From the sequence record LT598654.1: a stretch of 64,000 nt of DNA; one strand, written 5' to 3'. Position numbers and translations under genes: made by a program. Within the stretch, counting starts at the first letter, position 1, and each line of letters begins with the position of its first letter. The notes below the pieces were generated by a model. It saw only the letters and a list, made by a program, of their open reading frames with translations. It did not search any database and was not told the DNA's origin. Shown here in pieces: positions 10,574 to 34,927 of the stretch.

Positions 10574-10583
10574 AATTCGTCCT

Positions 10584-11794: not shown

Positions 11795-12281
11795 CTTCTT
11801 CCTCTTTCTTCTTTGGTTCGAACAGCGCACGAGGACTATGTTCGTTTATATAGCTAAGTCTGCTAAACAGCATTGTAAAGCGCAAACCCTTTAAGTCAGA
11901 TGCAGGAATTTTCATTCCAACATAGTACGACTCAGTGTTCCACTTCATCTTACAGCATTCTTGTACCTTACCTTGTTTACTGACATTAAAAACGTGTTCT
12001 TGGCAAATCCACTTTTTGGTTTGCTCGTCACGATAAACGAAATAACCGATATACGTATCGAGACCTGTAACCTTTCCGTATTCAGTTGCGTACTCAGTCG
12101 GGTTAGTAGCAGGAAACTTAGCTACTAACTTACCTTTAGGAATAACGGGCAACTTAAACAGACGTAAAGGCAAGTCCCTTACATTGTAATATGTCTCAGC
12201 AAGTTCCTCGATGATTGCATCTTTCAATACCATCTTTTTAGGAGACAAGCTCAAACTGGATAGGTTCAGGTCTGCTAACAT
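11748..12281 (-). CDS. Hypothetical protein
   Basis: 177 aa; start abuts the tmk stop. Confidence 0.7.
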   Translation of the reverse strand: MLADLNLSSLSLSPKKMVLKDAIIEELAETYYNVRDLPLRLFKLPVIPKGKLVAKFPATNPTEYATEYGKVTGLDTYIGYFVYRDEQTKKWICQEHVFNVSKQGKVQECCKMKWNTESYYVGMKIPASDLKGLRFTMLFSRLSYINEHSPRALFEPKKKEEEDERIWEDDRIQGRSV

Positions 12282-16376: not shown

Positions 16377-16826
16377 CTACGGATTAAGAGGCTTTACGTG
16401 TTCACCTGAAACTTCAATCTTCATACCAACTAATGCCTTCATATTCAGAAATGTTTTAATATCGGAATCTGTAGGTTGATACTTAACGCTAGTATGTAGA
16501 TTGAACTCAGGGTGGTAAGAATGCTTCAAGCCGAAACTTTTTGATATAGCCCAATGTCTTCGTACAAGCGCAGGACACTTTAACTTAAACACCAGTGCTT
16601 TCCATTTACCTGTGCCCATAACATCCAGACCTGTAACCTCGCAAGTGTATTTGCGATCAGGTCGTGCTTCAATTCGATGAACCTCATTTTGCTCTGGCGC
16701 GTACATGAGAGTTATGTGCATATCAGGAATTAGGTCTTTAATCATGGCATCTGTAAACACCTTTCGAATCTTTAAAATGTCGAGAGGGTTAACATTAAGT
16801 GCCATGTAGGTTCCAATTTCTTTCAT
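16377..16826 (-). CDS. acb1: 2H phosphodiesterase, Acb1/T4 gp57B-like anti-CBASS nuclease
   Basis: Two HxT/S motifs (HITLMY, HTSVKY); GTYMAL, ALVFKL...RRH and E..KPL are collinear with T4 57B; similar length. Confidence 0.75.
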   Translation of the reverse strand: MKEIGTYMALNVNPLDILKIRKVFTDAMIKDLIPDMHITLMYAPEQNEVHRIEARPDRKYTCEVTGLDVMGTGKWKALVFKLKCPALVRRHWAISKSFGLKHSYHPEFNLHTSVKYQPTDSDIKTFLNMKALVGMKIEVSGEHVKPLNP

Positions 16827-17234: not shown

Positions 17235-17762
17235 TTAGCTAAAGATTACTTCAAAATCAGTTGCAGAGTATTCACGCTGGTCAAGGTAACCACCGAGAAG
17301 TTTTAAGTCTGCTTCTGATTCTTCATCACCTGCTGTACCGAAGTAAGCAATAGGTGCATAGAAGTTTGACGTAGTAATGTCAGTGATTGTCATATTGGAC
17401 GCATCACCACCGTTTGACGTTACTGCGAACACAAACCAACCTGGAATACCTTCGTCAATATACTGGAAATCCGCAGGTGACTCAGACAGAGGCCACTGCA
17501 CCATTTTAACATTGGGGAATCGCGGAGCAAAGTCTTTGTCGTAAGCAGTTACCTGTAGACAAGTATCACCTTGAGCACTAGCCCAATTAAAGATAGCATC
17601 CATGCGAAGGTCACCGTTGCTGTTAATGTCGGCGTCTTTCATGGCATCAATGTCTGCACTTGTAGGTGGTGTACCTGTGAACATAGCCAGGATTTTAACA
17701 CCCGATGCAGAAAGGCGCGTGTAATTAGAGAAGCGAACAAAGTTATTTGAAACCTGAATCAT
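17235..17762 (-). CDS. Paralog-array virion protein, short form
   Basis: 175 aa; MFTGTPPT...GWFVF...GTAGDEESEADLKL. Confidence 0.8.
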   Translation of the reverse strand: MIQVSNNFVRFSNYTRLSASGVKILAMFTGTPPTSADIDAMKDADINSNGDLRMDAIFNWASAQGDTCLQVTAYDKDFAPRFPNVKMVQWPLSESPADFQYIDEGIPGWFVFAVTSNGGDASNMTITDITTSNFYAPIAYFGTAGDEESEADLKLLGGYLDQREYSATDFEVIFS

Positions 17763-18685
17763 AGTGTGTCCTCCACGTGCTTACCTTCTAACTCGCAGAA
17801 AATTAAACGAGCTGCCTTACCAGGTTGGATAGTAGTATTTGCTACAGTCAGTTCGGCTGGTGATAAGGCAGAACCAACGTTCATCCAAATGAAGGGCCAG
17901 TTATCAATTGCAGACGAAGCACCGTGACCCCGTAAGTCAAAGAACATCATACACCAGCTAACAGGTGTTGAAGTATCTACATTGGTTGTAGGAGCAACGT
18001 TTGAAAAGAAACGGATGTGGTGCATACGAACAACATTGGTGCTGTTGGAAGTAAATACAAAGCGAATCATATTCGTATTGTAAGTAGCCCCAAATGCGAT
18101 GCGCTGGTCGGTAGCTGCTGCGGTATCGACAGAGGTAATATCTACAAATTCTTCACCTACGCTGTCCCAATACTGAACAGTAAAGTCAGCAATGTTAAGT
18201 GCATTAGGAAAAGAGAAGTCAATACCGTCAATGTCAGCATTATAGCCGAAACCAAATTCAATGTATTCACCGGAGTTGATTGGTCCTGTGCCTTCATATT
18301 TGGATTCACCTTGCGTAACATCCTGTGTTAGTAAGTCCGTAAATTCAAATTGGGCGTCAGCATCAATAGGTAACGTGGTTGAGATTGAAGTAGGTACACA
18401 CCAATACGCACCTTCACGAGTAACGTCTTCACCAGTGCCTTTAAAATCAAGACCTACTTTATCAGAGTTAGGTCTGAACTGGATTTTACCTGTTGCACTG
18501 TCATAGCTGAGAACAGATTCAACCATTGCAACACTAGCATTGTATACGCTCAATACATCAGTTGGGTCAAAGGGAATTTCTGCTTCGGTAGCTGGAATGG
18601 TTGAGTTAAACAAAAACACTTTAACGTCTTTGTTAGACAACGCACCAAACGACTCACCTAAGCTCTTTGCTTGTTCTATGATCAT
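17759..18685 (-). CDS. Paralog-array virion protein, long form with discoidin/CBM-like insert
   Basis: 308 aa; FLFNSTIPAT..EIPFD; insert EYIEFGF...FTVQYWD...IRFVF; C-terminal SW...NVGS. Confidence 0.8.
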   Translation of the reverse strand: MIIEQAKSLGESFGALSNKDVKVFLFNSTIPATEAEIPFDPTDVLSVYNASVAMVESVLSYDSATGKIQFRPNSDKVGLDFKGTGEDVTREGAYWCVPTSISTTLPIDADAQFEFTDLLTQDVTQGESKYEGTGPINSGEYIEFGFGYNADIDGIDFSFPNALNIADFTVQYWDSVGEEFVDITSVDTAAATDQRIAFGATYNTNMIRFVFTSNSTNVVRMHHIRFFSNVAPTTNVDTSTPVSWCMMFFDLRGHGASSAIDNWPFIWMNVGSALSPAELTVANTTIQPGKAARLIFCELEGKHVEDTL

Positions 18686-18694
18686 GAGTACACC

Positions 18695-19237
18695 TTATTG
18701 ATGATGGAAAGTAAATACGCTTGGAATAATAGGCGTATCACTTGTAATTGATGTTGTAGAAATTTCTAAGTCAGCGCCTGATCCCGGATTTCCTACTGTA
18801 CCGATAGCGGTATAGAAATTCTCGTAAGCAACAGACCTGTAGTTTGCAGTAGTGACTTGATCAAATACCTGACTCAGAACAAACCATGTTGCAGTACCTT
18901 CCGCTAGGTGAGCGTAGTTAGTATTGCTACTGCTTAAATCGATTTCACTGGTCTGTGTGTCGATTGCTGTCCACAGACTTGCATCGTTAGGAGAGAAGTT
19001 ATAGTACAGTTCAGTACCGAATCCGTCACACCAGCCCATCAAAAGATGGTGATGAACCATATCATCCAAGCCGTTTGCGTTCAAAGAACCAGACAGCTTA
19101 GCTGTATTGTATTCTGCAAATGTAGGCGGTGTTCCTGAAAACAGGTGAAGCAACATTTGAAAGTTACTTCCGTTTTCCTGAGAGTACAGACGATTGTTCA
19201 TTCCTAAAAGAAAAGATTGATTAAAAATCATTATCAC
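18695..19237 (-). CDS. Paralog-array virion protein, short form
   Basis: 180 aa; LFSGTPPT...ATWFVL...GTVGNPGSGADLEI. Confidence 0.8.
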   Translation of the reverse strand: MIMIFNQSFLLGMNNRLYSQENGSNFQMLLHLFSGTPPTFAEYNTAKLSGSLNANGLDDMVHHHLLMGWCDGFGTELYYNFSPNDASLWTAIDTQTSEIDLSSSNTNYAHLAEGTATWFVLSQVFDQVTTANYRSVAYENFYTAIGTVGNPGSGADLEISTTSITSDTPIIPSVFTFHHQ

Positions 19238-20271
19238 ACCTCACGGGCTTTGAAAGTAAAGTCACCAGCCAACAAAGCGCAATCTCTTCCTCTGTCTGGA
19301 GTTTTACGACTGAAAATAAATTCAGCATCATCCTCAGGACCACCAGCCGTAGCAAGCAAGAAAGCACCTTCATGTGTGTATTGCATGTATGCGCCAAGAC
19401 CTGGTGATACAGGAATAACGATAGCCCAAGTAATCTCTTGAGAGGCAACAGGTTCAGCAGGGGTAGCACCAAAGAAGCTAAACTGATCAAGTACAGAATA
19501 GATATTAGACGAATCACCTTCATCTATTTCAATACGAAGCTTGGTAGTGACTGCTTGCTCCGCAAGAACAATAGTCTGGTTATCTACCTGTTCAATAGGG
19601 CTCAGCGTATGGATCAATACCCAATCACCCGCACCCGCATTCAGAGTTTCATCCCATTTGAATACGCGCATGTCACCTTCAAACATGTTAGTGCCAGGGC
19701 CTTTGATTTCGATAGAATCAATACCGACTTCTGTAGCAAAGTCGAGGTCGAAATAGAAACCTTCCAACAAATTCTCAGGACCTATTCCAAAGAAACATCC
19801 GTATTGATGTTTAGTTGGACCGCCAGGAATAAACAACGAATCCAGAGGACTGTAGTTGTTTGAATTATGCGGGTTAGCAGGAGTGTTCAGGTACTTACCT
19901 AAGTTAGTCTCAACTGTCTGTGGGATATGACGATACTTTGATACCGAGTAATCATAGTATCCAAGTTTAGGCAAACAGATTACAGACGAAGACTTCTGAG
20001 TAAACTGTATGGTATTAACAGAGGTAGCACCTTGATTCGCCGTCAGGTAAGAACTGGTTATCATATTGTTGTAGATACCAGCCCAGTTAAACAAACGGAA
20101 ATTTTCATCAATGTTACCGTTGAGATCTGAGTTTCCGTTTTCAATAAACATTTCAAAGGGAATGTCTTCGACGGAAGCAGGAACCGCACCACCGAATGCG
20201 TAAATGAGATAGTCTGGTCCCATTCGTGTACGCATCTGGAATTGAGGCATATATGTGTTATCAATAATCAT
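19234..20271 (-). CDS. Paralog-array virion protein, long form
   Basis: 345 aa; AFGGAVPASVEDIPF; insert containing WDETLNAGAGDW; ITWAIVIP. Confidence 0.8.
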   Translation of the reverse strand: MIIDNTYMPQFQMRTRMGPDYLIYAFGGAVPASVEDIPFEMFIENGNSDLNGNIDENFRLFNWAGIYNNMITSSYLTANQGATSVNTIQFTQKSSSVICLPKLGYYDYSVSKYRHIPQTVETNLGKYLNTPANPHNSNNYSPLDSLFIPGGPTKHQYGCFFGIGPENLLEGFYFDLDFATEVGIDSIEIKGPGTNMFEGDMRVFKWDETLNAGAGDWVLIHTLSPIEQVDNQTIVLAEQAVTTKLRIEIDEGDSSNIYSVLDQFSFFGATPAEPVASQEITWAIVIPVSPGLGAYMQYTHEGAFLLATAGGPEDDAEFIFSRKTPDRGRDCALLAGDFTFKAREV

Positions 20272-20278
20272 TACTTCC

Positions 20279-21031
20279 TCACATAGTTATAGTAGGAGTA
20301 TTGGACGGCTGAGGATTCCATTGAGTCCCCATGATAAGTTTACCTGACAGAGTAGACATAGTTAACTCTGTGGATTTCACTACCATAAACCCTACGTTCT
20401 TTTTGAAAGCTGCACCTGTTGCATCACCTACAGTAGAGATAGGTTTGTTAGAAACATACTTAACCTCAGAGCTAACGTTAACTGAATTAGGTGATGCCAG
20501 TTCAACAGGGGCTTGATGGATAAAGAATTGAGTTTCAAAATCCATATCTGCAAAGTCTAAATCAATAGGTGTGACTTCTGCATTGAACGTTAGAATCCAG
20601 GGGCGTGTATCAGGTTGACCGATACTGTTTTGAATCTCACCGTCAACAGGTTGTGAGAAATTAATATCGTTAATGGACTCTACTTCGACACCTGCGCTGT
20701 AGTCTGACGCAAGAAGATATGTATAGCTGTTTGAAATTGAATCAGCTTCCACCCCTGCATCAAAATCCATACCCGTTAAGGCTACAACAATAGAGTAACC
20801 GAACATTTCGGATTTGCTGAACTGTTGACTTTCTAACAGGTACACACCTAAGACAGTGTTTGATTCCAATAAGCTATTCTTAGAAAAATCGAAACTTTCT
20901 TCAAAGGTGTATACTGAAAAATCAGGAGTAGCGTTTCCGATAAGGGAAGACTTCTTTAAGTTCTCCCCATCGAAAACCCAAGCACCAGGGTCAAACTGAT
21001 CAGCAACGTATGGTATGATTTGTAAAAACAT
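20279..21031 (-). CDS. Hypothetical acidic protein within the array
   Basis: 250 aa; beta-rich; lacks the full array motifs (only TVGDATGA resembles them). Confidence 0.7.
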   Translation of the reverse strand: MFLQIIPYVADQFDPGAWVFDGENLKKSSLIGNATPDFSVYTFEESFDFSKNSLLESNTVLGVYLLESQQFSKSEMFGYSIVVALTGMDFDAGVEADSISNSYTYLLASDYSAGVEVESINDINFSQPVDGEIQNSIGQPDTRPWILTFNAEVTPIDLDFADMDFETQFFIHQAPVELASPNSVNVSSEVKYVSNKPISTVGDATGAAFKKNVGFMVVKSTELTMSTLSGKLIMGTQWNPQPSNTPTITM

Positions 21032-21047
21032 ACTTAGTTACCTTTTG

Positions 21048-21602
21048 TTATACAGCTGGTTGCTGTGCCTGTACGTTGATATTAAAGTTTACAGTAATAT
21101 CGTTCAACTTGTAGCTACGAGTAGTGTCAATAACTGGGTCAGTCATTTCTAAATCTGCACCCGATTCGATACCACCTACTGTACCGAAGATATGCCAGTA
21201 AGAATAGCTATCTGGGTTACCGTCTATGTGTTGGAACATCCAGAACCAAGTTGCAGTAGAACCGTCTACCAGCCCGAACGCAGATTCAGCACGTTGAGAC
21301 AAGAAGAAGTCCATTTGCTTTTGCGTAGTTAAACGTCGGTTAGTTAGGTTGTTGTAGGTCAACGAAAGCAAATTCGTGTAACTACCACCTGCTAACATAT
21401 TCGCGTTGAACTCACTGGTAACCATCCAACCGTCGGCGTGGTGAGTAACACCGTTAGCGTAACCTTCAAGTTCTGAGTAGGTAGGCATCGTACCATCGAA
21501 CAAGCGCACAGTAACACTGTCTGTACTGTTGCCGTAGTTTTCCCAAAAACGTTTTAGTGCAGATGCACGGAAATCGTCGTTAACATCAATCACGTTACTC
21601 AT
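21048..21602 (-). CDS. Paralog-array virion protein, short form
   Basis: 184 aa; LFDGTMPT...ATWFWM...GTVGGIESGADLEM. Confidence 0.8.
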   Translation of the reverse strand: MSNVIDVNDDFRASALKRFWENYGNSTDSVTVRLFDGTMPTYSELEGYANGVTHHADGWMVTSEFNANMLAGGSYTNLLSLTYNNLTNRRLTTQKQMDFFLSQRAESAFGLVDGSTATWFWMFQHIDGNPDSYSYWHIFGTVGGIESGADLEMTDPVIDTTRSYKLNDITVNFNINVQAQQPAV

Positions 21603-21636
21603 TGATTACTCCAAAGTAATTAGTCGCATGTTTAAA

Positions 21637-22704
21637 TTAAAGAGAATCTTTAAATTCAAGATTAAAGTTCTGAACGGTAGGACCTCTGAAACGATCCATA
21701 AGAGTTCTATCCAGTTCAATAGGCGCACCTGAACCTACTGTACCTACGTTACACATAATCACAGGATACCCACTAGTTGTACTCTTGTTGTAACTACTGG
21801 TGTTGTATCGTGAAAAGAAGTTGTTGTAAACAGTCTGGTAAGGATACAGCAATGCCCATGTAATATCACGAGCATCTGTATTCCACGCAGGTTGAGGTCC
21901 GATTAAGTTCAACTGGTTAAGTGCGAAAGAACCTCCACCTGTATTGTTCCAACGGAAACGGAAACGTGTAGAAGTCACAGCCGCAGGCAACTTAATAAAA
22001 CGGGTAAGGTTCTGAGAGAAATAGAACGTATCGTTAATTGAATACGTTATTGCTTCTACCCAATCACCTGCACCCTCATTAGCAGTTGCATCCCACCAAT
22101 CAAAAGTCCAAACACTAGGAGTATTACCTGCGGCCTTCCAGGTAATGTATGCAATTTCTTCTACTGTAACTTCCTGACCATCATAGTCAAAGATATAGTT
22201 ATCAGTACTAGAGTCAGCGGGTGAACCACCGTCCCAGTTATCGGTTGCTTTTGCCATCGCAGGGTCAGCAATACGCAGACGGTTATCGAAACGGTAGAAG
22301 AAATGCTGGGCACGAAGATACGTTTCATTATCGGCATGTGCGTCCGGGTTCTTAATCGTACCATCATCTTCAAAGTACAGAGAAGACATAAGACGATAAG
22401 GTGCCAAATAATACTTGTCAGTTCCCGGAAAAGGAGTATTTACCTTAACGTCAAAGCGAGTCCGAGTGGTTGCACGAATTGATGATCGGTTTACGCCCAC
22501 ATCACCATAGACCAAAGACAAAGTTTGAGCGTGAACTAAATGGCGCTGCACTTCATACAGGTCTTGGTAATCAAAAGGGATTTCATCAACTGAGTTAGGA
22601 ACAGCACCGTCGAAATAGATAGCCATCGCCATATTATCAGCGGTGCTGCTAAAGTGGTGCTTGAAGCTATTAAAAAAGCTAGTGTGTGCGTTAAACAAAA
22701 ACAT
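21637..22704 (-). CDS. Paralog-array virion protein, long form
   Basis: 355 aa; YFDGAVPNSVDEIPFD; WDATANEGAGDW; ITWALLYP; NVGTVGSGAPIEL. Confidence 0.8.
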   Translation of the reverse strand: MFLFNAHTSFFNSFKHHFSSTADNMAMAIYFDGAVPNSVDEIPFDYQDLYEVQRHLVHAQTLSLVYGDVGVNRSSIRATTRTRFDVKVNTPFPGTDKYYLAPYRLMSSLYFEDDGTIKNPDAHADNETYLRAQHFFYRFDNRLRIADPAMAKATDNWDGGSPADSSTDNYIFDYDGQEVTVEEIAYITWKAAGNTPSVWTFDWWDATANEGAGDWVEAITYSINDTFYFSQNLTRFIKLPAAVTSTRFRFRWNNTGGGSFALNQLNLIGPQPAWNTDARDITWALLYPYQTVYNNFFSRYNTSSYNKSTTSGYPVIMCNVGTVGSGAPIELDRTLMDRFRGPTVQNFNLEFKDSL

Positions 22705-23852
22705 TATACACTTACCTCAGGCTCGATGAATTCAAAGTTAATGTTCAAGATTCTAGGGAAGAAGTACCCTGGAAGCCCCGTGCTCTTTGACAGTACCAAT
22801 AGATGATCTTGGTCTAACGCATCACCTACACTACACAACATTACTGGAAGCTTACCTACTTCACTATGGCTTTCAGTATTTGCTCTGGCAAAGATGCTTT
22901 CGCGCAGGTTAATAGGCGCCGGTAACACTAGTGCCCAAGTAATATCAAGAGGTGCAGTGTTATAAGGCTCTAATGTACTCAACAGGCTAACATGACGAAT
23001 ATAGTTGTACGAATTACCAGTGTTAACACCACTTAGAATAAACTTCTTAGCAGTGATTGGAGGAATCTCAACAAAGAACTCCTTATCTGCATTAAAGTTT
23101 ATCTCGCTGGTATCGTTGATGTAATGTTGAACCCATGAAGAAGTTTCTTCATCATAATATTCAAGTGCCCACTGTGCTGAGGTGTAGCTGGTGTTGGAGT
23201 ATTGGTAAATCTCCAACGCATCTACCGTAACGTCTTGATCGAACTCCATGAACACACCCTGGTCATTAGACAGGGCATAACGTCCGCTGTAAAGAGAACC
23301 GTAGTTAGTCCAGTCTCGACCTAAGTTACCAGGTGTACCTGAATAGCGTTCATTGTACCAACAAGCTAAGTCACCGAAGTGCATCTGCCATCGATAGCTA
23401 TTGATTCCTGAGTAGTCTAATTCACCTGGACTCTGGTCGGGAAACAATCCATAGTACGTTGAACTTGCCGGATCACTAGAAGGGAATTCATTTAAGAACT
23501 CAGGGCTAAGGTCATAACGTGCCAAGTATTCGGGAGCCAGTCTGTATCTGCCTCTGCGAACATCCATAGCACTACGCTTTACCGGAACGGCGTTTAACGA
23601 GTGATCACCTTCAAGGATATTTGCATCCTCACCTGTCTTTTGGTACATAGCTGCAAAAGACATAGCCACACAGTTGCGTGAAATATCAAAAGGATTCTGA
23701 ACACTAAAAGGAACTTCGTCCAATGAATTAGGAACAGGGCCTGAAAACAAGTAACAGGCAAATACTTTACGAGTATCAGAGAAGGAATCACTAGACCCCA
23801 TTATCTCCAAAGCAGACTTAGCTAAGCTAGGTCCTGTTTTAAAAGTTAACAT
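22704..23852 (-). CDS. Paralog-array virion protein, long form
   Basis: 382 aa; LFSGPVPNSLDEVPF; MEFDQDVTVDAL; ITWALVLP; SVGD. Confidence 0.8.
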   Translation of the reverse strand: MLTFKTGPSLAKSALEIMGSSDSFSDTRKVFACYLFSGPVPNSLDEVPFSVQNPFDISRNCVAMSFAAMYQKTGEDANILEGDHSLNAVPVKRSAMDVRRGRYRLAPEYLARYDLSPEFLNEFPSSDPASSTYYGLFPDQSPGELDYSGINSYRWQMHFGDLACWYNERYSGTPGNLGRDWTNYGSLYSGRYALSNDQGVFMEFDQDVTVDALEIYQYSNTSYTSAQWALEYYDEETSSWVQHYINDTSEINFNADKEFFVEIPPITAKKFILSGVNTGNSYNYIRHVSLLSTLEPYNTAPLDITWALVLPAPINLRESIFARANTESHSEVGKLPVMLCSVGDALDQDHLLVLSKSTGLPGYFFPRILNINFEFIEPEVSV

Positions 23853-23853
23853 A

Positions 23854-24930
23854 TTACTCTCCGTAAGTTAAAGAAAAGGCGCTAAATTCTAAATCAGTTT
23901 TACCTGATAAGTTAGTAGCCGATTCTAATACGAAAACGCCACCTTTAGAGTAATCACCTACGCTACAAATCATTAGTGGAAACGTATCGTTCGCAGGATA
24001 CTCACCCGACAGAGTTAGGTTTGTGTCCCAGTCGCTTCCGTTACCTAAGTTGAGCAAACCGTACCAATAAGGCATAACGATACCCCAACCTAATGAAATA
24101 GTTTCGTTTAGGTTAGAAGGCTCAATGCTTGAATAGAAGCTAATGTACTTACAAATCCAATCTTGGCTTCCCGTGTCGCCGCCCTTCAATCTGAACTTTG
24201 TACCTACCACTTCTGAGGATAAAGTTACTTCGTTCTTTGAATTGGACTGAGAGTATGTGACGTTCACTGCTGAACCCCAACCTCCTGCACCTGCATTGAG
24301 TGTTTCATCCCAAGGCTCAAGAGTGAAGTTGGTATTCGTATAAGGATTACCTGAATGAGATTGTTGGATAGCAACGTGTGCAATGCTAACCTCTTCCTCA
24401 AACTCAATAATACTCGGATAGTTGTAGTGGCGACGGTTTGGTGAGATATAGAATTGAGGGTCAGTGTTACCTGCTTCAAATGCGTCTGGATTTCGCCACA
24501 AGATTGGAGCCCAGCTTGCTACGTAACGTAAACCGTTTACCTTAGCGTATCGGTTGTCACCACCTGCTTCTATCCCATCTACCTGTACATCGTAACATGA
24601 ATATTTAGGGAACACACGATATAGATCGTTACGTGTGCTGTCTTGGTAAGGAGTCGTAAGCATCGACACGCAGCCTGAGTTTGACGCAGGTAATTCAGCA
24701 TCAATAGACAATGTATCAACGTCTTTAGGCATATTTAAGAATGCCCAGCCCTTTGCATTAGATGAAACCTCGATAGGATTAGTTATGTCGAAGGGAATAT
24801 CATCAACACTGCTTGGCTTGTCACCTTCCATTAACCACACAATAGTACGAGGGCCACCGTTTTCAGTAGACCCAAAGAAATTCCGACTAAGATTTTCTAA
24901 TTGTGCAGCGGAGTCTTTGAATAAAAACAC
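23854..24930 (-). CDS. Paralog-array virion protein, long form
   Basis: 358 aa; LMEGDKPSSVDDIPFD; WDETLNAGAGGW; LGWGIVMP; SVGD. Confidence 0.8.
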   Translation of the reverse strand: MFLFKDSAAQLENLSRNFFGSTENGGPRTIVWLMEGDKPSSVDDIPFDITNPIEVSSNAKGWAFLNMPKDVDTLSIDAELPASNSGCVSMLTTPYQDSTRNDLYRVFPKYSCYDVQVDGIEAGGDNRYAKVNGLRYVASWAPILWRNPDAFEAGNTDPQFYISPNRRHYNYPSIIEFEEEVSIAHVAIQQSHSGNPYTNTNFTLEPWDETLNAGAGGWGSAVNVTYSQSNSKNEVTLSSEVVGTKFRLKGGDTGSQDWICKYISFYSSIEPSNLNETISLGWGIVMPYWYGLLNLGNGSDWDTNLTLSGEYPANDTFPLMICSVGDYSKGGVFVLESATNLSGKTDLEFSAFSLTYGE

Positions 24931-24931
24931 A

Positions 24932-25342
24932 TTAGTCTCCTGAGAAATAAGCTTGGGAATCCGTAGTAGCGAAGGTTACTTCTTCACTGCTACCGTAATT
25001 AAAATCCCCATAATTAAAAGAGTAGTTGTCTGCATTGCTAACTACAGAAGTAGAGCCTGCACCTTGTACATGTTTATGCGCCGTGTAGTGAGGTCCTGCC
25101 GAACTAATGTGAGTTACTGTACTGGATACAGGAGACTCTAACATAGAAATAGCAGTGGTAATACCTTGAAATACTTCCTTGTGGAAAATCTCAAGGTCTA
25201 CCTCTGTGTCTGCAACGGCTGTATAAACAAACTTACCTGTAGGCACAGCTACGGCGACTTTAAGGATACTGGGATATGGATATATCTTTCCCGGGTCTCC
25301 GTAAGAACTGTAGAAGGTATCTTGTTTAAGTAAGCTACTCAT
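24932..25342 (-). CDS. Hypothetical protein within the array
   Basis: 136 aa; tightly coupled to neighbours; lacks the array motifs. Confidence 0.7.
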   Translation of the reverse strand: MSSLLKQDTFYSSYGDPGKIYPYPSILKVAVAVPTGKFVYTAVADTEVDLEIFHKEVFQGITTAISMLESPVSSTVTHISSAGPHYTAHKHVQGAGSTSVVSNADNYSFNYGDFNYGSSEEVTFATTDSQAYFSGD

Positions 25343-25888
25343 TTACTGTACCGTTAGTGAACCTAAATCAATTGTTACACTGCTAGGTTTAATGAACATA
25401 GACTCGGTAACGTTAATGTCGAGGAACTTCAACTCACCGGAACCATCTAAGTCGCTAATGTCTCCAGTAAACACGTAATGCTGTGTTAGATAGTCAGCAG
25501 ATACGCCTCTGATAGCAAACCAACCCAGCGTACCAGAGCCATTGATATTGTTTACGTTACCATCGACTTTATATTCGTTAGCACCTCTGTTTCCAAATCC
25601 GAAGCGCAAAGTAGTTTCGTTCTGAGGGACAATGTTTTTACTAAAGTCATCCAGAACAAATCTGCGAACAACGGTCTGACTTAGAGTAGTCTGAATATAC
25701 GCATCCCATTTGGTAGCATCCATCCATCCTGTGCCTCCGTCTTGATATACATCGGCTGCCTCGATAGCTGTCTTGTCAGGTCGTGTTCCTTCATACAAGT
25801 CAAATATTACCGGGAAGCCTCTGTCTTCTCCAAACATTCTGTACAAAGTGAATGGAAATAAACTAGAGCTTGCTAGAATCGTTGACAT
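25343..25888 (-). CDS. Paralog-array virion protein, short form
   Basis: 181 aa; LYEGTRPD...LGWFAI...GDISDLDGSGELKF. Confidence 0.8.
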   Translation of the reverse strand: MSTILASSSLFPFTLYRMFGEDRGFPVIFDLYEGTRPDKTAIEAADVYQDGGTGWMDATKWDAYIQTTLSQTVVRRFVLDDFSKNIVPQNETTLRFGFGNRGANEYKVDGNVNNINGSGTLGWFAIRGVSADYLTQHYVFTGDISDLDGSGELKFLDINVTESMFIKPSSVTIDLGSLTVQ

Positions 25889-26427
25889 TAGCTAGACACT
25901 CCCTGGATATTGAAATCAATTTGAATGTCATTGAATTTGAAAGGCTTGGTAGTAACGATGTTGGTATCAGTAACTTCCATATCAGCACCACTACCGATAA
26001 GACCTACTGTACCTACGGCTGCGCAACGAACATCAGCACCTGTATAAGAGGTTGCTTCGTCGTGCTGTATCATCAAGAACCATCCAACCAATCCGTCTAC
26101 AAGAGGAGTAGATACGTCAGTGCTACGGCTAAAGCAAAAACGAACAGTGGTAAAATCAATGTGTTCAATATACGAGAAGTTACTGTAACGTTGACGTACC
26201 AGTTCAGTACTACCGTGAGTACCCGTGATCCAGTTGATGAATCCCGAACTGGGCTTAGCCCAACCGTTTGAGTGCCAGCTATCAACGTTAGCTACCAGGT
26301 CAGCTTTTGTCGGAGGTGTGCCTGTGAACAGACTTATAGTAACGTCTTCGAGGTTGTTGTTAATGTCAACAATTGTGTTTTTAAGCAATACAGATTTCAT
26401 TGCTCTGTTTGGAATAACTGTAGGCAT
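25888..26427 (-). CDS. Paralog-array virion protein, short form
   Basis: 179 aa; LFTGTPPT...VGWFLM...GTVGLIGSGADMEV. Confidence 0.8.
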   Translation of the reverse strand: MPTVIPNRAMKSVLLKNTIVDINNNLEDVTISLFTGTPPTKADLVANVDSWHSNGWAKPSSGFINWITGTHGSTELVRQRYSNFSYIEHIDFTTVRFCFSRSTDVSTPLVDGLVGWFLMIQHDEATSYTGADVRCAAVGTVGLIGSGADMEVTDTNIVTTKPFKFNDIQIDFNIQGVSS

Positions 26428-26441
26428 TCTCTAAACTCCAG

Positions 26442-27650
26442 TTAAATGTCATTAAAGTCTAATACAAAGTTAAGCAACTCAGGAACTTCACCGGGTGCTA
26501 TAGAACGTGCCTTGTTCAACGTCATAGTGTTCCCATCGTTAGGACCACCTACGTCAACAAGCAATTGAGGATACTCACGCTTGTACAAATCAGGATTCGT
26601 TAGGGCTCCGTTAGTAACCCAGAACTCACGACCATTCACAGAATAGCCATAACGATCACGAATTTCACTGAACGAGTAACTACCCATATGGAACGGGCAG
26701 ATAAGACCCCAAGTAATATCAACACTAGGTACAGCAGTAGGCGGCGTAGAGGTTAAGAAGCGTAACCAACCGATGTAACAGTCATTACCACCAGTGCCTC
26801 CGAATTTTACACGGAAAGCTTTACCCGTTACATGAGTATCAAGCTCTATGTATTGAATTTCTGTATTTTCGGCAACGTTTATAGTCTGTTCGTCTACCCA
26901 AGTCTCAGTAGCTTCATCCCAAACGTCAAGAGTGATTACAGTAGGGCTATAGTTAGCACCCGAATACCAACCCATCCAGTACTCCAAGCTATCTAACGTA
27001 ACTTCTTCGTTAAACTCGAATACAGAAGGATAGTTATATGGGTATCGACCACCTTGTGCTTGAACAGAGTACCAATCGTAACCACTACCTACGCTAGGAA
27101 TAGGTCCGTCCCTGAGGTTAAGCATACGGTCGCGTGTACGATACTTAGACCACATGCGCTGTAGACCGAAATCAACACTGCACTGTCGGTAATCGTATTT
27201 AAACAAATCCAATACAGTAAGAGACAGGCTATTGGCAGAATAATTGATATAGTACTCTGCATTAACCATCGCAGTATTGTCGTTGCGATCATCATGCCAA
27301 AACATTTCACCGACTATAACAGCAGGAGTTAACGACCACTTGCTGTACGTTTGGTCCAGGTAAGGCTGCTTGGTAGGAATCAGAGTACGTAGATGCTGAG
27401 AATCAATACGTGTAGCACCAGGACCTGCTTGACCTGTTGTGTCTACATCACTTAAAAAGTGGATAGCGGTTTCGCAGTTACGTACTACATCAATTGGACT
27501 GGTTGCATCAAAAGTAATGTCATCAAATGATGTAGGCACAGGACCTGTGAATCCGTAAAAGATATTATAGTGCTGCCAAGCTGAAACTACATCACTGCGG
27601 TGAGTAGCATAGCTGTTTGCTAAAGCAGGACCAGAAAACAAAGTATACAT
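26442..27650 (-). CDS. Paralog-array virion protein, long form
   Basis: 402 aa; GFTGPVPTSFDDITFD; FEFNEEVTLD; ITWGLICP; DVGG. Confidence 0.8.
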   Translation of the reverse strand: MYTLFSGPALANSYATHRSDVVSAWQHYNIFYGFTGPVPTSFDDITFDATSPIDVVRNCETAIHFLSDVDTTGQAGPGATRIDSQHLRTLIPTKQPYLDQTYSKWSLTPAVIVGEMFWHDDRNDNTAMVNAEYYINYSANSLSLTVLDLFKYDYRQCSVDFGLQRMWSKYRTRDRMLNLRDGPIPSVGSGYDWYSVQAQGGRYPYNYPSVFEFNEEVTLDSLEYWMGWYSGANYSPTVITLDVWDEATETWVDEQTINVAENTEIQYIELDTHVTGKAFRVKFGGTGGNDCYIGWLRFLTSTPPTAVPSVDITWGLICPFHMGSYSFSEIRDRYGYSVNGREFWVTNGALTNPDLYKREYPQLLVDVGGPNDGNTMTLNKARSIAPGEVPELLNFVLDFNDI

Positions 27651-28786
27651 TACTCACTATCCCCTTCGAATTTGATATTGAAATTAATCAAGTTAATGTC
27701 TTCGAAAGGCATTACTTGGTCTGCTCGGTTGACAATAACTGCTGCATCCGAACCTGGTTCACCTACATCGAGAATCATCAACGGGTAACCATCTTTACGA
27801 ACAGTTTCTTCATCCGTATTAACATCGTACTGGTAAAGGTTCGGGTACGTATCAAAGCTAGAATCACTTTGGTTGGCACCTGAGAACATAATAACACCCC
27901 ACGTAATATCGACAGGTGTTTGCTGGATACCAGGATCTGCTTTAGAACAGAAGTGCATGTGTCGCCAATATGGATTCGTGTTACCTGTATCACCGAAAGT
28001 TATACGAATCTTGCTTGTGGTAAATGTCTCAGCGAAATCAATCAAGCAGACTGCGTTACGTCCATTGATTAACTGAGTATCATCGAGAGTGTCTACTTGA
28101 ACCCATTGAGAAGTAGCACTATCCCAACGGTCAATTGTTGCAGTAGTTGGCGTATAGTTACCGCTTGCAGAACCTTGACCAATCCACATACTATCGATAG
28201 GTACTTCCTGATCGAAGATATACACCAAAGGATAGCGATAAGCATAACGACTTAACCCTGCACTTTTGGCATAAGTGTTCTTCAGGAGGCGTTCTTCACG
28301 GTAACGATAACCGTTGATATTATAAATATCTTGAAGTTCACGCATATACAAGAAGCTAGCTTCGTCTTGGTAGGGAGTGTTGAAGTAGGTGGAGTCTTGA
28401 GCAGATTCACCTTCTTCGAACATGTTCTCAGGACCTCTGTGCGTTCGTGCAAGAGTACCTACCGAATGATTATAGACATACCGACCGAGTTCATCAAAGT
28501 ACTTGACGCCTTTAACTGCCATGTGTGCAGCGTAGTGGGTATAGTCAAATTCGCTTGTTTCGTTTCCTGTTACTGTATGTGTACCGTAAATTTGGTTAAA
28601 CGCAACAGCGGTTTTTGCTAACTCTACAGGACTTTTCTGCAAAGCTAGAGGTATATCATCAGCACTAGTTGGAGGAGTGCCGTCGAACAGAAACAAGATA
28701 GCGTAATTGTTATAGCTATTTGTGTCTGCGTTCTGCATACTACCCCAACCATAGGTTAGAGAAGATTCAGTAAAAAGAGTATACAT
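27650..28786 (-). CDS. Paralog-array virion protein, long form
   Basis: 378 aa; LFDGTPPTSADDIP; YIFDQEVPID; ITWGVIMF; DVGEPGSDA. Confidence 0.8.
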   Translation of the reverse strand: MYTLFTESSLTYGWGSMQNADTNSYNNYAILFLFDGTPPTSADDIPLALQKSPVELAKTAVAFNQIYGTHTVTGNETSEFDYTHYAAHMAVKGVKYFDELGRYVYNHSVGTLARTHRGPENMFEEGESAQDSTYFNTPYQDEASFLYMRELQDIYNINGYRYREERLLKNTYAKSAGLSRYAYRYPLVYIFDQEVPIDSMWIGQGSASGNYTPTTATIDRWDSATSQWVQVDTLDDTQLINGRNAVCLIDFAETFTTSKIRITFGDTGNTNPYWRHMHFCSKADPGIQQTPVDITWGVIMFSGANQSDSSFDTYPNLYQYDVNTDEETVRKDGYPLMILDVGEPGSDAAVIVNRADQVMPFEDINLINFNIKFEGDSE

Positions 28787-28801
28787 TAGTGTTCCTCACA
28801 A

Positions 28802-29872
28802 CTAAGAGCCGAAGCCTTGAAAGTTAATGTTCAGTTTACTAGGCTTTGCTACACCTAAGTAGGTCACATTAGGATCAACTAGTTCTACGGTAGAACCTGA
28901 ACCTGTTGCACCTACATCGAACAAAATCATGGGAGCAGGGTAGTCCAATGCACGATAGCTAAACGTACCTGTGATAGAAGCTGCATACGAACTGAAATCA
29001 GGAAGAGGAATAAAAATTCCCCAAGTAGGTGTTCTAATGTCCGTTTCGGTTGCTGCTACGTAAGGCTGCTGGTTTGTGAACAGGGACACCGAACTAACTG
29101 ACCAGTGTGGGTTACCTACAACATCAGTTGCTTCTGCTCTTGCGGCAGCGCCTCCTCTACAGGTGAGTCTAAGCTGAGAGATACCTGTTAAACTAAGAGG
29201 TGTAGTAAGATTCAAAATACCTGTCTGCAAAACATCCGTATCGAATGTTTGATGTTGCACCCAATCGCCAGCACCTGCGTTAAGAGTTTCATCAAAGTAG
29301 TCAAGGCTAACGCTGGTTGCACGAGTCGTATCAGAACCTGAACTTCCCTGATACGTTCGGGTGTAAGTAACATTACGTTGGACAAAACCAAAACCTGTCA
29401 GAGAAATAGAACCACCCGAGCCGTCGTCTAAATCAGGAAGGTCTATAGGTATGTAAGCGCCTTCACCTGTTCCGCAATTTAGATACAACCACTCACTTTG
29501 CTCACGGAAAGCAGAGTAATGAAAGAAAGAAGACCAGTCCCAGCTTAATGGGTCTAAGGAAGCGAACTCACTAGACCAAGCATGTTTGACAGGTATAACA
29601 AAATCAGTAACACCTACAGTAGCTCCGTAAACTCCTGCTTGTTCGTTAAATGGAACTGTTACTAAACCTGGTGAGTACGAAGCAGTCTGAGGCCCGACTC
29701 GTTTTAATCCTACAAAATTTGACTCAGCAAATACTTCTTGGATAACGGTTGGGTCAAATGCTAACTCGCCTAAATTCGTCGGAACAGTACCATCAAATAA
29801 GAGAAGTGCTCCGCTAGGAACATTCTCTGTAAATGATTCGGACATTACCGAACTCAGATTAATACCTTGCAT
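28802..29872 (-). CDS. Paralog-array virion protein, long form
   Basis: 356 aa; LFDGTVPT...LAFD; FDETLNAGAGDW; PTWGIFIP; DVGATGSGSTVEL. Confidence 0.8.
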   Translation of the reverse strand: MQGINLSSVMSESFTENVPSGALLLFDGTVPTNLGELAFDPTVIQEVFAESNFVGLKRVGPQTASYSPGLVTVPFNEQAGVYGATVGVTDFVIPVKHAWSSEFASLDPLSWDWSSFFHYSAFREQSEWLYLNCGTGEGAYIPIDLPDLDDGSGGSISLTGFGFVQRNVTYTRTYQGSSGSDTTRATSVSLDYFDETLNAGAGDWVQHQTFDTDVLQTGILNLTTPLSLTGISQLRLTCRGGAAARAEATDVVGNPHWSVSSVSLFTNQQPYVAATETDIRTPTWGIFIPLPDFSSYAASITGTFSYRALDYPAPMILFDVGATGSGSTVELVDPNVTYLGVAKPSKLNINFQGFGS

Positions 29873-29880
29873 TTGTTTTC

Positions 29881-30945
29881 CTATTGCTTAAACAGAAGGT
29901 TGAATTTGTGTACCTGTGGATATTGACCATTAGGAACTGGATTGTTGATAAGTTCAATCGTTGCACCTGAACCTGCATCACCCACATCCGCAAGCATAAT
30001 CGGAACTTCTATTTGTGTGTTTTGATTTAAGTCGAAAGGTACAGTAGCGGGCCAACTATCAGAACTCCATGCGAACGATTGGTTATTAGGAACAACCAAT
30101 GCCCACGTATATGTAGGTGAGCTACTTATAACTGTTTTAGTCTGGAGCGCAAAACTACTACATGACCAATGTGGGTCACCACTAGATACGATGTAGCCGT
30201 TAAGTACAGGACCGTCTATACAACGAATACGAAGTAAGTCTCGCCCTATAATAGGTGTAGCAAGTTTCCTACTACCAAAGGAGTTAGCATCTACGTTAGT
30301 GTTTGGTCCGTTGATCCACGTACTTGTGTCCCTGTCATAATAATCCAACGATGCTACGGTACATCGAGTGTTATACGAACCGGAACCCTGCCAACTAGGA
30401 CGCTTCTGTCTGGAGTTTATTGTACGCTGCCTAAAGTTCCACGCATCAATTTGATACGTATCCTTAATAGACTCGTCCAATTTAATATATAGACAACTGC
30501 CCTCACGACCTATCCGAGTAAAGTTGCTGTTGTTGTATACATTGCTAAGTTCTTTGAACGTACCGAAATTAGTCCAGCGTGTCATCGGACCTGTTGTGTC
30601 AGCAGTACAGTACTTTATAGGTAAGTTATACAACTGAGTTTCTACTGTAGTCGTACCGCCTTCACCGTCGTCAACGGACTCACTCAATGTTGAGATTAAA
30701 CTGTCGTCGGTGAATACTTTTGGGGCTGGCTGTAAACGACTTTCACCAGGAGTATACGCTCCTGTTTTTTCGGTGTAATAGTCAATGGATAAACAATTGT
30801 CTTGGATAGCTGCTAAATCGGTATAGTCAAAAGGCAAAGAAGCTATGTCAGAAGGCATAGCTCCACCGAAGTAAAACACATAAAAACCTACTGTGTTGTT
30901 ACCCATGCCGTATGACAGTACCCTGTTTAAATTAATAGCCTGCAT
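29881..30945 (-). CDS. Paralog-array virion protein, long form
   Basis: 354 aa; YFGGAMPSDIASLPFD; YTWALVVP; DVGDAGSGATIEL. Confidence 0.8.
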   Translation of the reverse strand: MQAINLNRVLSYGMGNNTVGFYVFYFGGAMPSDIASLPFDYTDLAAIQDNCLSIDYYTEKTGAYTPGESRLQPAPKVFTDDSLISTLSESVDDGEGGTTTVETQLYNLPIKYCTADTTGPMTRWTNFGTFKELSNVYNNSNFTRIGREGSCLYIKLDESIKDTYQIDAWNFRQRTINSRQKRPSWQGSGSYNTRCTVASLDYYDRDTSTWINGPNTNVDANSFGSRKLATPIIGRDLLRIRCIDGPVLNGYIVSSGDPHWSCSSFALQTKTVISSSPTYTWALVVPNNQSFAWSSDSWPATVPFDLNQNTQIEVPIMLADVGDAGSGATIELINNPVPNGQYPQVHKFNLLFKQ

Positions 30946-30964: not shown

Positions 30965-30993
30965 AAAAGGGAGGGGGCTTACGCCCTACTCCC
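30965..30993 (-). terminator. Rho-independent terminator between the fibre-base genes and the paralog array
   Basis: On -: GGGAGTAGGGC-GTAA-GCCCCCTCCC followed by TTTT, overlapping the stop of ORF 30986. Confidence 0.6.
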
Positions 30994-31402
30994 GAACCAC
31001 TGAAAATACTGCGCGACCCAACGTAGGTGTCGAGTTAAATACGATGGTTACCGTATTAGCATCTGTTGTTTCAACATCATCAGGAACTATGACTTTACCG
31101 TTCTCGTCAAAGATTTGAACGATATAAAGTTCACTGTTCATGTTGTGGGCGATAACCCAAGTAGTTGCAGCACTCTCTTGTACGTGAACAAAAGTATCTG
31201 CATTACCTGCAACGTCATCCAACAGCACAGCTTGTAAGGTTCCATCAATGTTCATCAGAATCTCACCAGCAGACAACTGAATGCCTGATAACTGACGAGG
31301 ACCTGCACCTTGACGAACAATAACAGAATTAGCAGCAACGTCTGCTGCCAGGTAGGGACGTAATGGAAGTTCCGTCTGAACGAAATCAGTAAATGCACTC
31401 AT
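30986..31402 (-). CDS. Virion/fibre-associated structural protein
   Basis: C-terminal FVHVQ..A..TWVIAHNM...VQIFD...D...DANTVTIVF...GRA is a common phage appendage beta-domain. Confidence 0.7.
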   Translation of the reverse strand: MSAFTDFVQTELPLRPYLAADVAANSVIVRQGAGPRQLSGIQLSAGEILMNIDGTLQAVLLDDVAGNADTFVHVQESAATTWVIAHNMNSELYIVQIFDENGKVIVPDDVETTDANTVTIVFNSTPTLGRAVFSVVRE

Positions 31403-34744: not shown

Positions 34745-34927
34745 TTATTTATTTACAAAGGTTATTCTACTTATATGAACCCAGTCTATTTCACCGGCTC
34801 TGTCTAGGGCTACTCGATGATTCAACCAGTCGAGCGCCCAAACTCTGTACGTTCCTGCATCACCAGAAACCTTAGCGTATTGCCAAGATTCTGGTAACGG
34901 AGGCATTTTTGATTTATTCCTCGACAC
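34745..34927 (-). CDS. Small hypothetical protein (YopX-like beta fragment possible)
   Basis: 60 aa; overlaps the upstream stop. Confidence 0.5.
   Translation of the reverse strand: MSRNKSKMPPLPESWQYAKVSGDAGTYRVWALDWLNHRVALDRAGEIDWVHISRITFVNK

Follow-up and report, generated by a model that had tools for sequence, protein, structure and literature searches.

What does a phage build from 14 paralogous genes of unassigned function that stand in a row beside its tail genes? This question is raised by the genome of Phage NCTB (LT598654.1, a 257,877-bp circular record labeled 'surface water'), which contains such an array on the minus strand at positions 17235-30945 of the 64,000-nucleotide stretch analyzed here. 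Below, this whole stretch, which is 100% identical to the record, is called the window, and a window position is the LT598654.1 record position minus 124,000. NCTB is known from the literature as a jumbo phage from a metagenome, and has been grouped with PaBG, Lu11, and the Erwinia and Dickeya phages Y3, Yoloswag, Alexandra, JA11-33, and AD1 (PMC7412058; PMC6143709). In GenBank, every gene of the array is labeled 'hypothetical protein'. On balance, we favor the view that the 14 paralogs are bead subunits from which a chain-like tail fiber or a garland is assembled. The short form of the family is related in sequence to a fiber-dimer protein of phage A1002 and in fold to a chain of phage 7-7-1, whereas the nine long forms consist of the same scaffold with a CBM32 / F5-8C-fold domain in a loop, and the set is conserved gene for gene beside tail genes. 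The remaining part of the mechanism considered below is drawn by analogy with phages A1002, GP4, VP1, Milano, and A511.

The interval comprises 16 co-oriented open reading frames (ORFs), with gaps of -4 to 34 bp in the ORF listing, and is separated from the upstream 138-amino acid (aa) gene by 40 bp (Table 1). All-versus-all BLASTP, profile hidden Markov models (HMMs), and iterated module HMMs applied to six-frame ORFs identify exactly 14 family members in the window, all of them within 17235-30945: five short forms (175, 180, 184, 181, and 179 aa) and nine long forms (308, 345, 355, 382, 358, 402, 378, 356, and 354 aa). The same 14 paralogs, five short and nine long, had been proposed in an initial annotation of this DNA along with a frame shared by their N- and C-termini, and both proposals are borne out. 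Of the 14 members, 12 have the motif [FY]-x-G-x-x-P near the N-terminus, compared to none of five neighboring ORFs and two of 52 background ORFs, and the C-terminal W / VG..SGA frame is seen in most members. The initial annotation did not mention that the interval also holds two unrelated genes, at 20279-21031 (250 aa) and 24932-25342 (136 aa). The possibility that these are diverged members of the family was rejected, the hhalign probability being below 1% against both family profiles.

Database annotation is of little help for these proteins. Pfam, PHROGs, and PADLOC searches with all of them gave only phrog_17152 (function unknown), a weak phrog_3758 match, and sub-threshold F5_F8_type_C matches. 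The word-indexed protein searches matched close relatives from jumbo-phage contigs only, and the names of relatives obtained by cluster look-ups were uninformative. A promoter and terminator scan gave no signal above chance.

Informative relationships were found for the short form. When 1.84 billion cluster representatives were scanned in full by HMMER with a short-form profile, 559 proteins were obtained at E <= 1e-3, mostly of 160-190 aa, in agreement with the initial suggestion that this form is part of a phage family with a wide distribution. Among 74 aligned short-form relatives, 63 fall into phrog_17152, whose function is unknown, and 8 into phrog_3758, annotated as 'virion structural protein'. 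A profile of 83 sequences (A6) matches the PDB chain 44nx_B (147 aa) at E 5.7e-8, with profile positions 1-167 aligned to residues 1-144 of the chain, and a narrower profile of 74 sequences (A5) matches it at E 0.0016. The 44NX entry belongs to the Pseudomonas podophage A1002 and holds fiber I gp40 (147 aa) and fiber II gp41 (171 aa) (PMC13730344); from its length of 147 aa, 44nx_B is taken to be gp40.

The fold search points in the same direction. The AlphaFold2 (AF2) model of the 179-aa short form has a predicted local distance difference test score (pLDDT) of 76.5 and a predicted template modeling score (pTM) of 0.77, with low confidence in the N-terminal 24 residues. Its single Foldseek match in the PDB at E <= 1e-3 is 9rkv_A (139 aa, E 8.4e-6, probability 1.0), from the entry 'Agrobacterium phage 7-7-1 tail fibers', which holds the long fiber, the short fiber, and the small garland protein gp014 (PMC12796354). 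No sequence-level match to 9RKV was found in the PDB sequence searches with profiles A5 and A6, and the matches from the BFVD fold search are all uncharacterised proteins.

Solved structures of this kind have been described. A1002 has six 'chain-like fibers' of 11 dimers each, in which gp40 forms dimers 1-7 and gp41 forms dimers 8-11, and the dimers are arranged in tandem on the nozzle-rope protein gp39 through β-sheet augmentation (PMC13730344). The fibers of phages GP4 and VP1 are similar, and the A1002 fiber with its two bead types was reported in November 2026 as the first such case (PMC13730344). In phage Milano, the garland around the fiber tips is formed by two paralogs with ~30% identity, whose genes flank a candidate string gene, and it has been compared to T4 gp8 and A511 gp105, threaded 'like beads on a string' (PMC10811340). 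In view of the sequence match to 44nx_B, the fold match to 9rkv_A, and the A1002 and Milano papers, the short form, as judged from its sequence and its predicted structure, belongs to the bead family of chain-like fibers and garlands.

The podophage fiber dimers (A1002 gp40/gp41, 44NX; GP4 gp80, 8JOU; VP1 gp11) are small proteins with a single domain and 140-171 aa, and the NCTB short form belongs to their sequence family. The five short forms (175-184 aa) agree with this small single-domain type, and the nine long forms are larger by a nested domain and linker of ~170 aa. In A1002, paralogs with 16% identity coexist in one fiber (PMC13730344), and the NCTB paralogs are likewise of low identity. 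In A1002 gp41, the first ~30 residues are disordered or missing (PMC13730344), just as the N-terminus of the NCTB model is of low confidence, and the podophage fiber-dimer genes and the NCTB array alike adjoin tail genes. On the other hand, podophages have one or two bead genes, whereas NCTB, a relative of jumbo myoviruses, has 14; the solved podophage beads lack an insert, whereas nine of the NCTB beads carry a lectin-fold domain in a loop; and the rope is known in A1002 (gp39) and GP4, whereas in NCTB there are only candidates for it.

The garlands made of 7-7-1 gp014 (9RKV) and Milano gp125/gp127 share the myovirus context with NCTB. The Milano locus has a non-family gene, the candidate string gp126, between gp125 and gp127 (PMC10811340), and in NCTB two non-family genes are interspersed in the array. 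However, the 7-7-1 and Milano garlands are encoded by one or two genes and have no inserted domain, compared to 14 genes, nine of them with an insert, in NCTB; their position at the distal fiber ends is shown, whereas NCTB is known here from its genes. T4 gp8 and A511 gp105 have the same fold as the Milano garland and form dimers, three of which are threaded on an extended chain in A511 (PMC10811340), but they sit near the baseplate and connect fibers rather than form a fiber. Their link to NCTB is indirect, because Foldseek at E < 0.02 did not recover them; nor did they appear in the PDB sequence searches with the short-form profiles.

The long forms, as far as profile comparison can tell, are the short-form scaffold interrupted by one insert. 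In hhalign, the A5 profile of the short form matches the N part of the long forms with a probability of 74% (E 2.8e-5) and the C part with a probability of 94.6% (E 6.7e-8), but the insert with a probability of only 1.3%. Since the N and C parts match the short-form profile and the middle does not, this split-scaffold anatomy, which had been supposed at the outset, is real. The AF2 models of the short and long forms have the same strand order, with an all-β block of ~170 residues nested before the conserved Trp strand. The sequence homology to 44nx_B covers the short forms, and the long forms are tied to it via hhalign.

The insert was predicted to have a lectin-like fold. For the model of the 402-aa long form, Foldseek found 123 PDB matches at E <= 1e-3, led by CBM32 domains with bound galactose, F5/8 type C domains, discoidin, and APC10/Doc1. 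The top matches of the insert are 2v72 (E 1.1e-5), 2v5d, 7blg, 2j1a, and 3nng, each with ~95-120 aligned columns. The long-form profile (A4) also matches the CBM32 entry 7blg among PDB sequences, although weakly (E 0.036), and Pfam F5_F8_type_C matches below the threshold map to the insert in two NCTB paralogs and in orthologs; for seven of the nine long forms, Pfam gives no match to the insert at E <= 0.1. We consider the assignment of the insert to the CBM32 / F5-8 type C fold, a galactose-binding-domain-like β-sandwich, to be sound at the level of the structural model, and the discoidin/CBM32 likeness noticed initially thus holds at the fold level. In contrast to CBM32 / F5-8C domains appended to enzymes, the NCTB domain of this fold is nested in another domain.

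The nine inserts had been described initially as different and highly divergent modules displayed on a constant scaffold. This part of the description has to be replaced, as the inserts diverge to the same extent as the scaffold. Among paralogs, the identity is 18% for the N scaffold, 21% for the insert, and 21% for the C scaffold. The corresponding values for orthologs are 56%, 61%, and 58% in a close metagenomic relative (L002) and 33%, 41%, and 38% in a more distant one (L004). Both BLASTP and the HMMs align the long forms through the insert, where common motifs are present. Since the inserts align, share motifs, and diverge no more than the scaffold, one ancient insertion followed by duplication explains all nine of them as a single homologous domain.

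A 39-nt stretch is common to four of the nine long forms, with 79-85% nucleotide identity (19618-19656, 22057-22095, 24274-24312, and 29258-29296). The residues encoded there form an additional Gly/Ala-rich loop in the CBM32-like insert, situated between two conserved Trp residues. The proteins are only ~20% identical overall, and the stretch could reflect either strong constraint or local gene conversion.

A different combination was found in an unrelated 80-kb phage contig (L016). It encodes a 611-aa protein (10001-11836 of that contig) with an N-terminal bead domain and two Laminin_G_3 (ConA-like) domains behind it (E 5e-21). Because of this fusion, we conclude that the bead scaffold has been used more than once as a carrier of lectin-type modules. 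The gene of the fusion sits within the array of this contig, adjoining genes of collagen-repeat and Calx-beta proteins.

The array is conserved as a whole. Four metagenomic relatives, L002 from Tara and L004, L005, and L018 from IMG/VR, have the same 16 genes in the same order, and the best matches between genomes occupy the same slot, with the exception of one short form and the two long-form slots at the upstream end. Within the array, the identity is 50-80% in L002 and 30-50% in L004 and L005, compared to 67-76% for the 551-aa and 138-aa proteins encoded upstream of it; the array diverges faster than these neighbors, as peripheral adsorption proteins usually do. The repeat scan found direct repeats of only 20-47 nt, situated over conserved motifs, and one imperfect inverted pair of 24 nt, with no long repeats or invertible arms, no template/variable repeats of the type found in diversity-generating retroelements (DGRs), and no inverted repeats flanking cassettes. 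Since the 16 genes are colinear in four relatives at 30-80% identity, and the DNA-level repeats are mere remnants of 20-47 nt, the duplications are ancient events that have become fixed; all paralogs are retained, and the array evolves rapidly as one unit. The initial proposal of an ongoing expansion of the host range by gene duplication does not agree with these data: an array of such age, which holds its position in five genomes, agrees better with an obligate multi-part structure.

The turnover seems to be concentrated at the upstream end of the array, which is the least conserved. Slot 2 (the slots are numbered as in Table 1) has no same-slot best match in L002, and the slot 3 protein, which has 356 aa in NCTB, has 439-460 aa in L004 and L005.

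By analogy with the solved systems, each paralog would form a dimer, as the known beads do through a hydrophobic interface, and the dimers would be lined up along an extended rope polypeptide, bound to it by β-sheet augmentation. Since all 14 paralogs are kept, each of them probably has its own place on the rope, and a heteromeric fiber or garland whose composition is fixed would be formed at the tail periphery. The nine lectin-fold heads may then provide many weak and different contacts with the surface polysaccharide of the host, which we picture as marine, and thereby the first reversible attachment; these sugar contacts are predictions. In short, the array probably builds a multi-lectin fiber or garland. 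The heteropolymeric fiber envisaged in the initial annotation is retained in part: the solved relatives are beads of heteromeric fibers and garlands, but the beads dock on a rope and do not polymerise by themselves (PMC13730344).

Several observations weigh against this account. The TM-scores between 9rkv_A and the short-form model are moderate (0.46 and 0.56), and 9rkv_A is probably the 7-7-1 garland protein gp014 by elimination, because of the size of the chain (139 aa). GP4 (8JOU), T4 gp8, and A511 gp105 are not among the Foldseek matches better than E 0.02, and the links to these three come from the literature. The insert misses the Pfam cut-offs of PF00754 and PF22633 (best scores of 14.9 and 14.4 bits versus 28.2 and 27.8), the confidence of the 402-aa model is moderate, with linker regions below pLDDT 50, and the same fold serves protein-protein contacts in APC10/Doc1, which is among the Foldseek matches of the insert. 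The homologs in Y3 and Alexandra are all annotated as 'hypothetical'. Finally, the candidates for the rope are the 250-aa and 136-aa genes, the upstream 551-aa/138-aa pair, or a baseplate protein encoded elsewhere, and none of them is singled out. The 250-aa, 136-aa, and 551-aa proteins have no internal repeats and are of ordinary composition, and no homologs of the 250-aa and 136-aa proteins were found in the Y3, Alexandra, L016, L017, PaBG, and Lu11 loci.

The 250-aa and 136-aa genes within the array are attractive as ropes because Milano gp126 lies between gp125 and gp127, and we speculate that they may encode a rope or an adaptor. Neither these two proteins nor the 551-aa protein show homology to a known rope. 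The 250-aa protein is conserved in its N-terminal ~27 aa and its C-terminal tip and variable in the middle, with orthologs in the same slot of L002, L004, L005, and L018. The slot 8 protein is conserved in its N-terminal ~30 aa and variable in the remainder. It has 136 aa in NCTB and 131 aa in L002, but its counterparts in L004 (12326-13705), L005 (12335-13714), and L018 (5314-6672) have 453-459 aa and contain an extra globular region; the first ~110 residues are common to the long and short versions (E 1.9e-38). In the long version, a motif block occurs twice within the extra ~330 residues, for which Pfam gives no match, and the NCTB protein resembles the two ends of the long version without its middle.

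The upstream pair is better conserved and differs from what was first supposed. The 551-aa protein is 69-76% conserved in the relatives, far above the array, and is similar to proteins of PaBG (40% identity in tblastn) and phiKZ (gp145, 28%), with a match to phrog_15433 at E 3e-80; no PDB sequence match was found for it. The initial annotation had placed an immunoglobulin (Ig)-rich fiber gene upstream of the array. Instead, the 551-aa protein is phiKZ gp145-like and has neither an Ig nor a sheath domain in Pfam, and the Ig-like domain resides in the 138-aa protein. An HMM of the latter (slot 1) matches Y3_097, Y3_095, the C-terminus of Y3_098, and Alexandra gp098 and gp096, as well as two L016 ORFs (207 and 74 aa) and PaBG gp092. 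Thus this Ig-like domain also heads the analogous arrays in Y3, Alexandra, and L016.

The 551-aa protein is annotated as 'Phage tail assembly', and its homologs (the PaBG gp093, phiKZ gp145 family) as 'tail sheath'. Neither label is supported by the present data, and a role as a second sheath protein was rejected, as the protein has no Pfam sheath match at E <= 1 and its BLASTP match to the real sheath has E 0.19; the real sheath is encoded at 46508-48118 (PF04984 at 1.9e-18). The published 'two tail sheath proteins' in the phage group of NCTB may rest on this annotation.

Similar arrays exist in other lineages. In Y3 and Alexandra, analogous runs of ~19 genes (Y3_079-Y3_097 and gp079-gp098) contain at least eight members each that are detectable with profiles derived from NCTB, and tblastn finds the family in 52 records of Erwinia, Dickeya, and Yersinia jumbo phages; for one long form searched by tblastn against the phage collection, nothing was found outside NCTB. 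The L016 contig encodes at least ten members and another one (L017) four, and in both cases they adjoin fiber-like or lysis genes. Like the NCTB array, those of Y3, Alexandra, L016, and L017 are tandem mixtures of short and long forms that follow a ~540-570-aa protein and small Ig-like proteins. However, the large protein preceding these arrays is not homologous to the NCTB 551-aa protein, and in Y3 and Alexandra only 8 of the ~19 genes are recognized as members by the NCTB-derived profiles. The terminal long-short-long-short quartet recurs in the NCTB, Y3-like, L016, and L017 lineages, and its members give the best matches between lineages; this quartet may be the ancestral core.

These occurrences bear on the 'hairs' of hairy myoviruses. 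A hairy morphology has been reported for Y3, JA, AD1, and Lu11, the responsible proteins being stated as unknown, and the initial annotation had linked the array to such structures. If the array proteins were the hairs, they would form bead chains running from the baseplate or neck along the sheath, a variant in location that is compatible with beads on a rope. This variant is conceivable, but we regard it as rather doubtful. The analogous arrays in Y3-like phages and the 52 Erwinia, Dickeya, and Yersinia records are consistent with it, and the solved chain-like fibers run along the tail in A1002 or up to the capsid in GP4 (PMC13730344). PaBG also fits: its published description is that of an ordinary A1 myovirus with small tail-end appendages and makes no mention of hairs, and its syntenic site has the pair of 551-aa and 138-aa genes but no array (profile scan of the 41-kb syntenic region; the rest of PaBG was searched by tblastn alone, with no match).

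Yet Lu11, which is reported to be hairy, has no member at E <= 0.01 in its whole 280-kb genome (L010-L015) scanned with seven profiles, a scan that may miss ORFs cut at the 50-kb chunk boundaries and, as with any HMM, remote homologs; nor does the hairy lineage of CBB and Rak2-like phages give a tblastn match to the family. Moreover, in the solved myovirus homologs the beads form a garland at the baseplate and do not lie along the sheath (7-7-1, PMC12796354; Milano, PMC10811340), and NCTB itself is a metagenome assembly. Thus, of the proposed link to hairs, the analogous arrays of hairy Y3-like phages stand, and hairy Lu11 does not conform.

The Lu11 genome contains eight co-oriented genes of ~255-430 aa, mostly alternating between ~290 and ~400 aa (Lu11_0103-Lu11_0110; L011 25761-34093). 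They look like a different paralog array, and no NCTB family profile matches them.

The array could also be purely architectural, that is, a connector or garland of a tail fiber network (TFN) in which the inserts are modules for protein-protein contacts and do not bind glycans. The authors of the Milano structure likened its garland proteins to BW3-TFN connectors and left a receptor role undetermined (PMC10811340), the protein-binding module APC10/Doc1 is among the top fold matches of the insert, and an insert that is as conserved as the scaffold and not hypervariable, in an array with all 14 slots strictly retained, would fit a structural constraint. We nevertheless consider this explanation unlikely. 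The best-scoring fold matches are CBM32 modules with bound sugar, L016 has a fusion of this scaffold with ConA-like lectin domains, the array diverges much faster than the core tail proteins, as host-contact proteins do, and the authors of the A1002 study propose that both dimer types recognize receptors (PMC13730344).

A bolder version of the bead-on-rope account is that the heteropolymer is 'written' genetically: 14 different bead dimers, nine of which would bear distinct lectin-fold heads, would occupy fixed and ordered positions on ropes formed by the 250-aa and 136-aa proteins, the gene order would be the assembly order, and the product would be the hair of Y3/JA type. We find this version quite improbable; if true, it would represent by far the most complex chain-like fiber known, compared to the two bead types in A1002.

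Even less probable, and in our opinion very much so, is a repertoire of alternative receptor-binding proteins, of which one or a few would be present per virion and the others would be spare specificities that widen or switch the host range. A large tandem family with a lectin fold beside tail genes, in which relatives show poor conservation or replacement at the first two slots, would suit such a repertoire. However, there is no DGR, invertible segment, or long repeat, whether direct or inverted; the genes all have the same orientation, and their frames overlap or nearly abut; every slot, including the short forms that lack an insert, is ordered alike in five genomes at 30-80% identity; and the solved homologs put all paralogs into one fiber (PMC13730344). 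There is hardly any chance that the array proteins are not parts of the virion, for example lectin-like proteins made during infection, in spite of their uniformly hypothetical annotation and of Acb1 among the next genes downstream, which puts the array at a module boundary, as they are homologous in sequence and fold to solved virion proteins, match phrog_3758 ('virion structural protein') weakly and nothing in PADLOC, and continue the tail genes in position and orientation.

Bead-on-rope fibers and garlands as such are known already. The literature and databases searched describe neither a fixed set of 14 paralogs, nor a CBM32-fold domain nested in nine of them, nor mixed arrays of short and long forms that recur across lineages. 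The structures of chain-like bead-on-rope fibers are of recent date and limited to small phages, and NCTB would represent an expansion of the same family in a jumbo-phage lineage, where most copies were turned into lectin-fold carriers by domain insertion; the design recurs in unrelated phages with other lectin-type domains. On the basis of homology and models, a structural role can be tentatively assigned to ~14 kb of 'hypothetical' genes in NCTB and to runs of ~19 genes in Erwinia and Dickeya jumbo phages, and the composition of the hairs of hairy myoviruses becomes a question that can be answered in phages already in culture.

Table 1. Genes of the NCTB array and of the pair upstream of it, in the order of the minus strand (window positions; the module HMM values are E-values for the N scaffold, insert, and C scaffold)
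Gene	Position	Strand	Evidence	Further observations
551-aa protein, directly upstream of the array	31402..33057	-	phiKZ gp145 / PaBG gp093 family; context, possible anchor	
Slot 1, 138 aa, C-terminal Ig-like domain	30986..31402	-	Weak Pfam FlgD_ig; PHROG Ig-like ends of virion/decoration proteins	
Slot 2, long, 354 aa	29881..30945	-	Module HMMs N 7e-20, insert 2e-19, C 1e-20	Least conserved between relatives; best L002 match 26% identity, in the neighboring slot
Slot 3, long, 356 aa	28802..29872	-	Module HMMs N 3e-17, insert 5e-18, C 1e-16; BLASTP vs slot 2 E 2e-20	
Slot 4, long, 378 aa	27650..28786	-	Module HMMs N 6e-30, insert 6e-38, C 7e-22	Iterated short-form profile covers both flanks, 23-88 and 215-376
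Slot 5, long, 402 aa (modeled)	26442..27650	-	AF2 pLDDT 71.6, pTM 0.78; Foldseek CBM32 / F5-8C	In the model: scaffold N ~1-130, linker ~131-204, CBM32-like insert ~205-302, scaffold C ~306-402
Slot 6, short, 179 aa (modeled bead)	25888..26427	-	Foldseek 9rkv_A; phrog_17152, phrog_3758	
Slot 7, short, 181 aa	25343..25888	-	Short-form HMM E 3.8e-5 before iteration, 2e-43 after	Most divergent short paralog; orthologs 44-64% identity
Slot 8, non-family, 136 aa	24932..25342	-	hhalign <1% vs both profiles; no Pfam, PHROG, PADLOC match	
Slot 9, long, 358 aa	23854..24930	-	Module HMMs N 3e-27, insert 2e-37, C 3e-19	
Slot 10, long, 382 aa	22704..23852	-	Module HMMs N 1e-31, insert 8e-35, C 7e-20	Sub-threshold Pfam F5_F8_type_C, E 0.03, residues 198-283
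Slot 11, long, 355 aa	21637..22704	-	Module HMMs N 5e-30, insert 3e-28, C 8e-26	Iterated short-form profile 2e-32 across residues 170-355
Slot 12, short, 184 aa	21048..21602	-	BLASTP vs 179-aa form E 1.8e-21; phrog_17152	Best conserved short paralog, 82% to L002
Slot 13, non-family, 250 aa	20279..21031	-	hhalign <1% vs both profiles; no database match	
Slot 14, long, 345 aa	19234..20271	-	Module HMMs N 2e-24, insert 5e-26, C 1e-14	
Slot 15, short, 180 aa, GTG start	18695..19237	-	phrog_17152 E 2e-9	GenBank version 153 aa; orthologs of 179-184 aa favor the longer start
Slot 16, long, 308 aa	17759..18685	-	Long-form HMM E 5.7e-15; module HMMs N 4e-28, insert 1e-25, C 2e-16	Shortest long form, best conserved across lineages; best match of the L016 313-aa protein; sub-threshold Pfam F5_F8_type_C_2 match
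Slot 17, short, 175 aa, last array gene	17235..17762	-	phrog_17152 E 6e-15	Best cross-lineage match for the L016 terminal short forms and Y3_081

Along the minus strand, the array is preceded by the sheath gene (46508-48118), the tube genes, the tape measure gene, the gene of a gp5-like spike (36018-36845), and the 551-aa and 138-aa Ig-like genes, and is followed by a 123-aa gene and Acb1. The latter, an Acb1-type anti-CBASS phosphodiesterase (16377-16826, minus strand; PF23474, E 4e-11), is the second gene 3' of the array, after the 123-aa ORF, and an Acb1 gene occupies the equivalent position in L002. Amid the tail and baseplate block, the gene at 34914-35978 (minus strand) is annotated as a QueD-like 6-pyruvoyl-tetrahydropterin synthase; it is also present in L004, with a faint PF01242 match. 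Finally, the GenBank starts of at least five array genes (18695-19237, 25343-25888, 27650-28786, 29881-30945, and 19234-20271, all on the minus strand) lie 7-30 codons 3' of the starts backed by the lengths of the orthologs in the four relatives. For instance, the first two of these genes are annotated with 153 and 151 aa, compared to 180 and 181 aa from the upstream starts.

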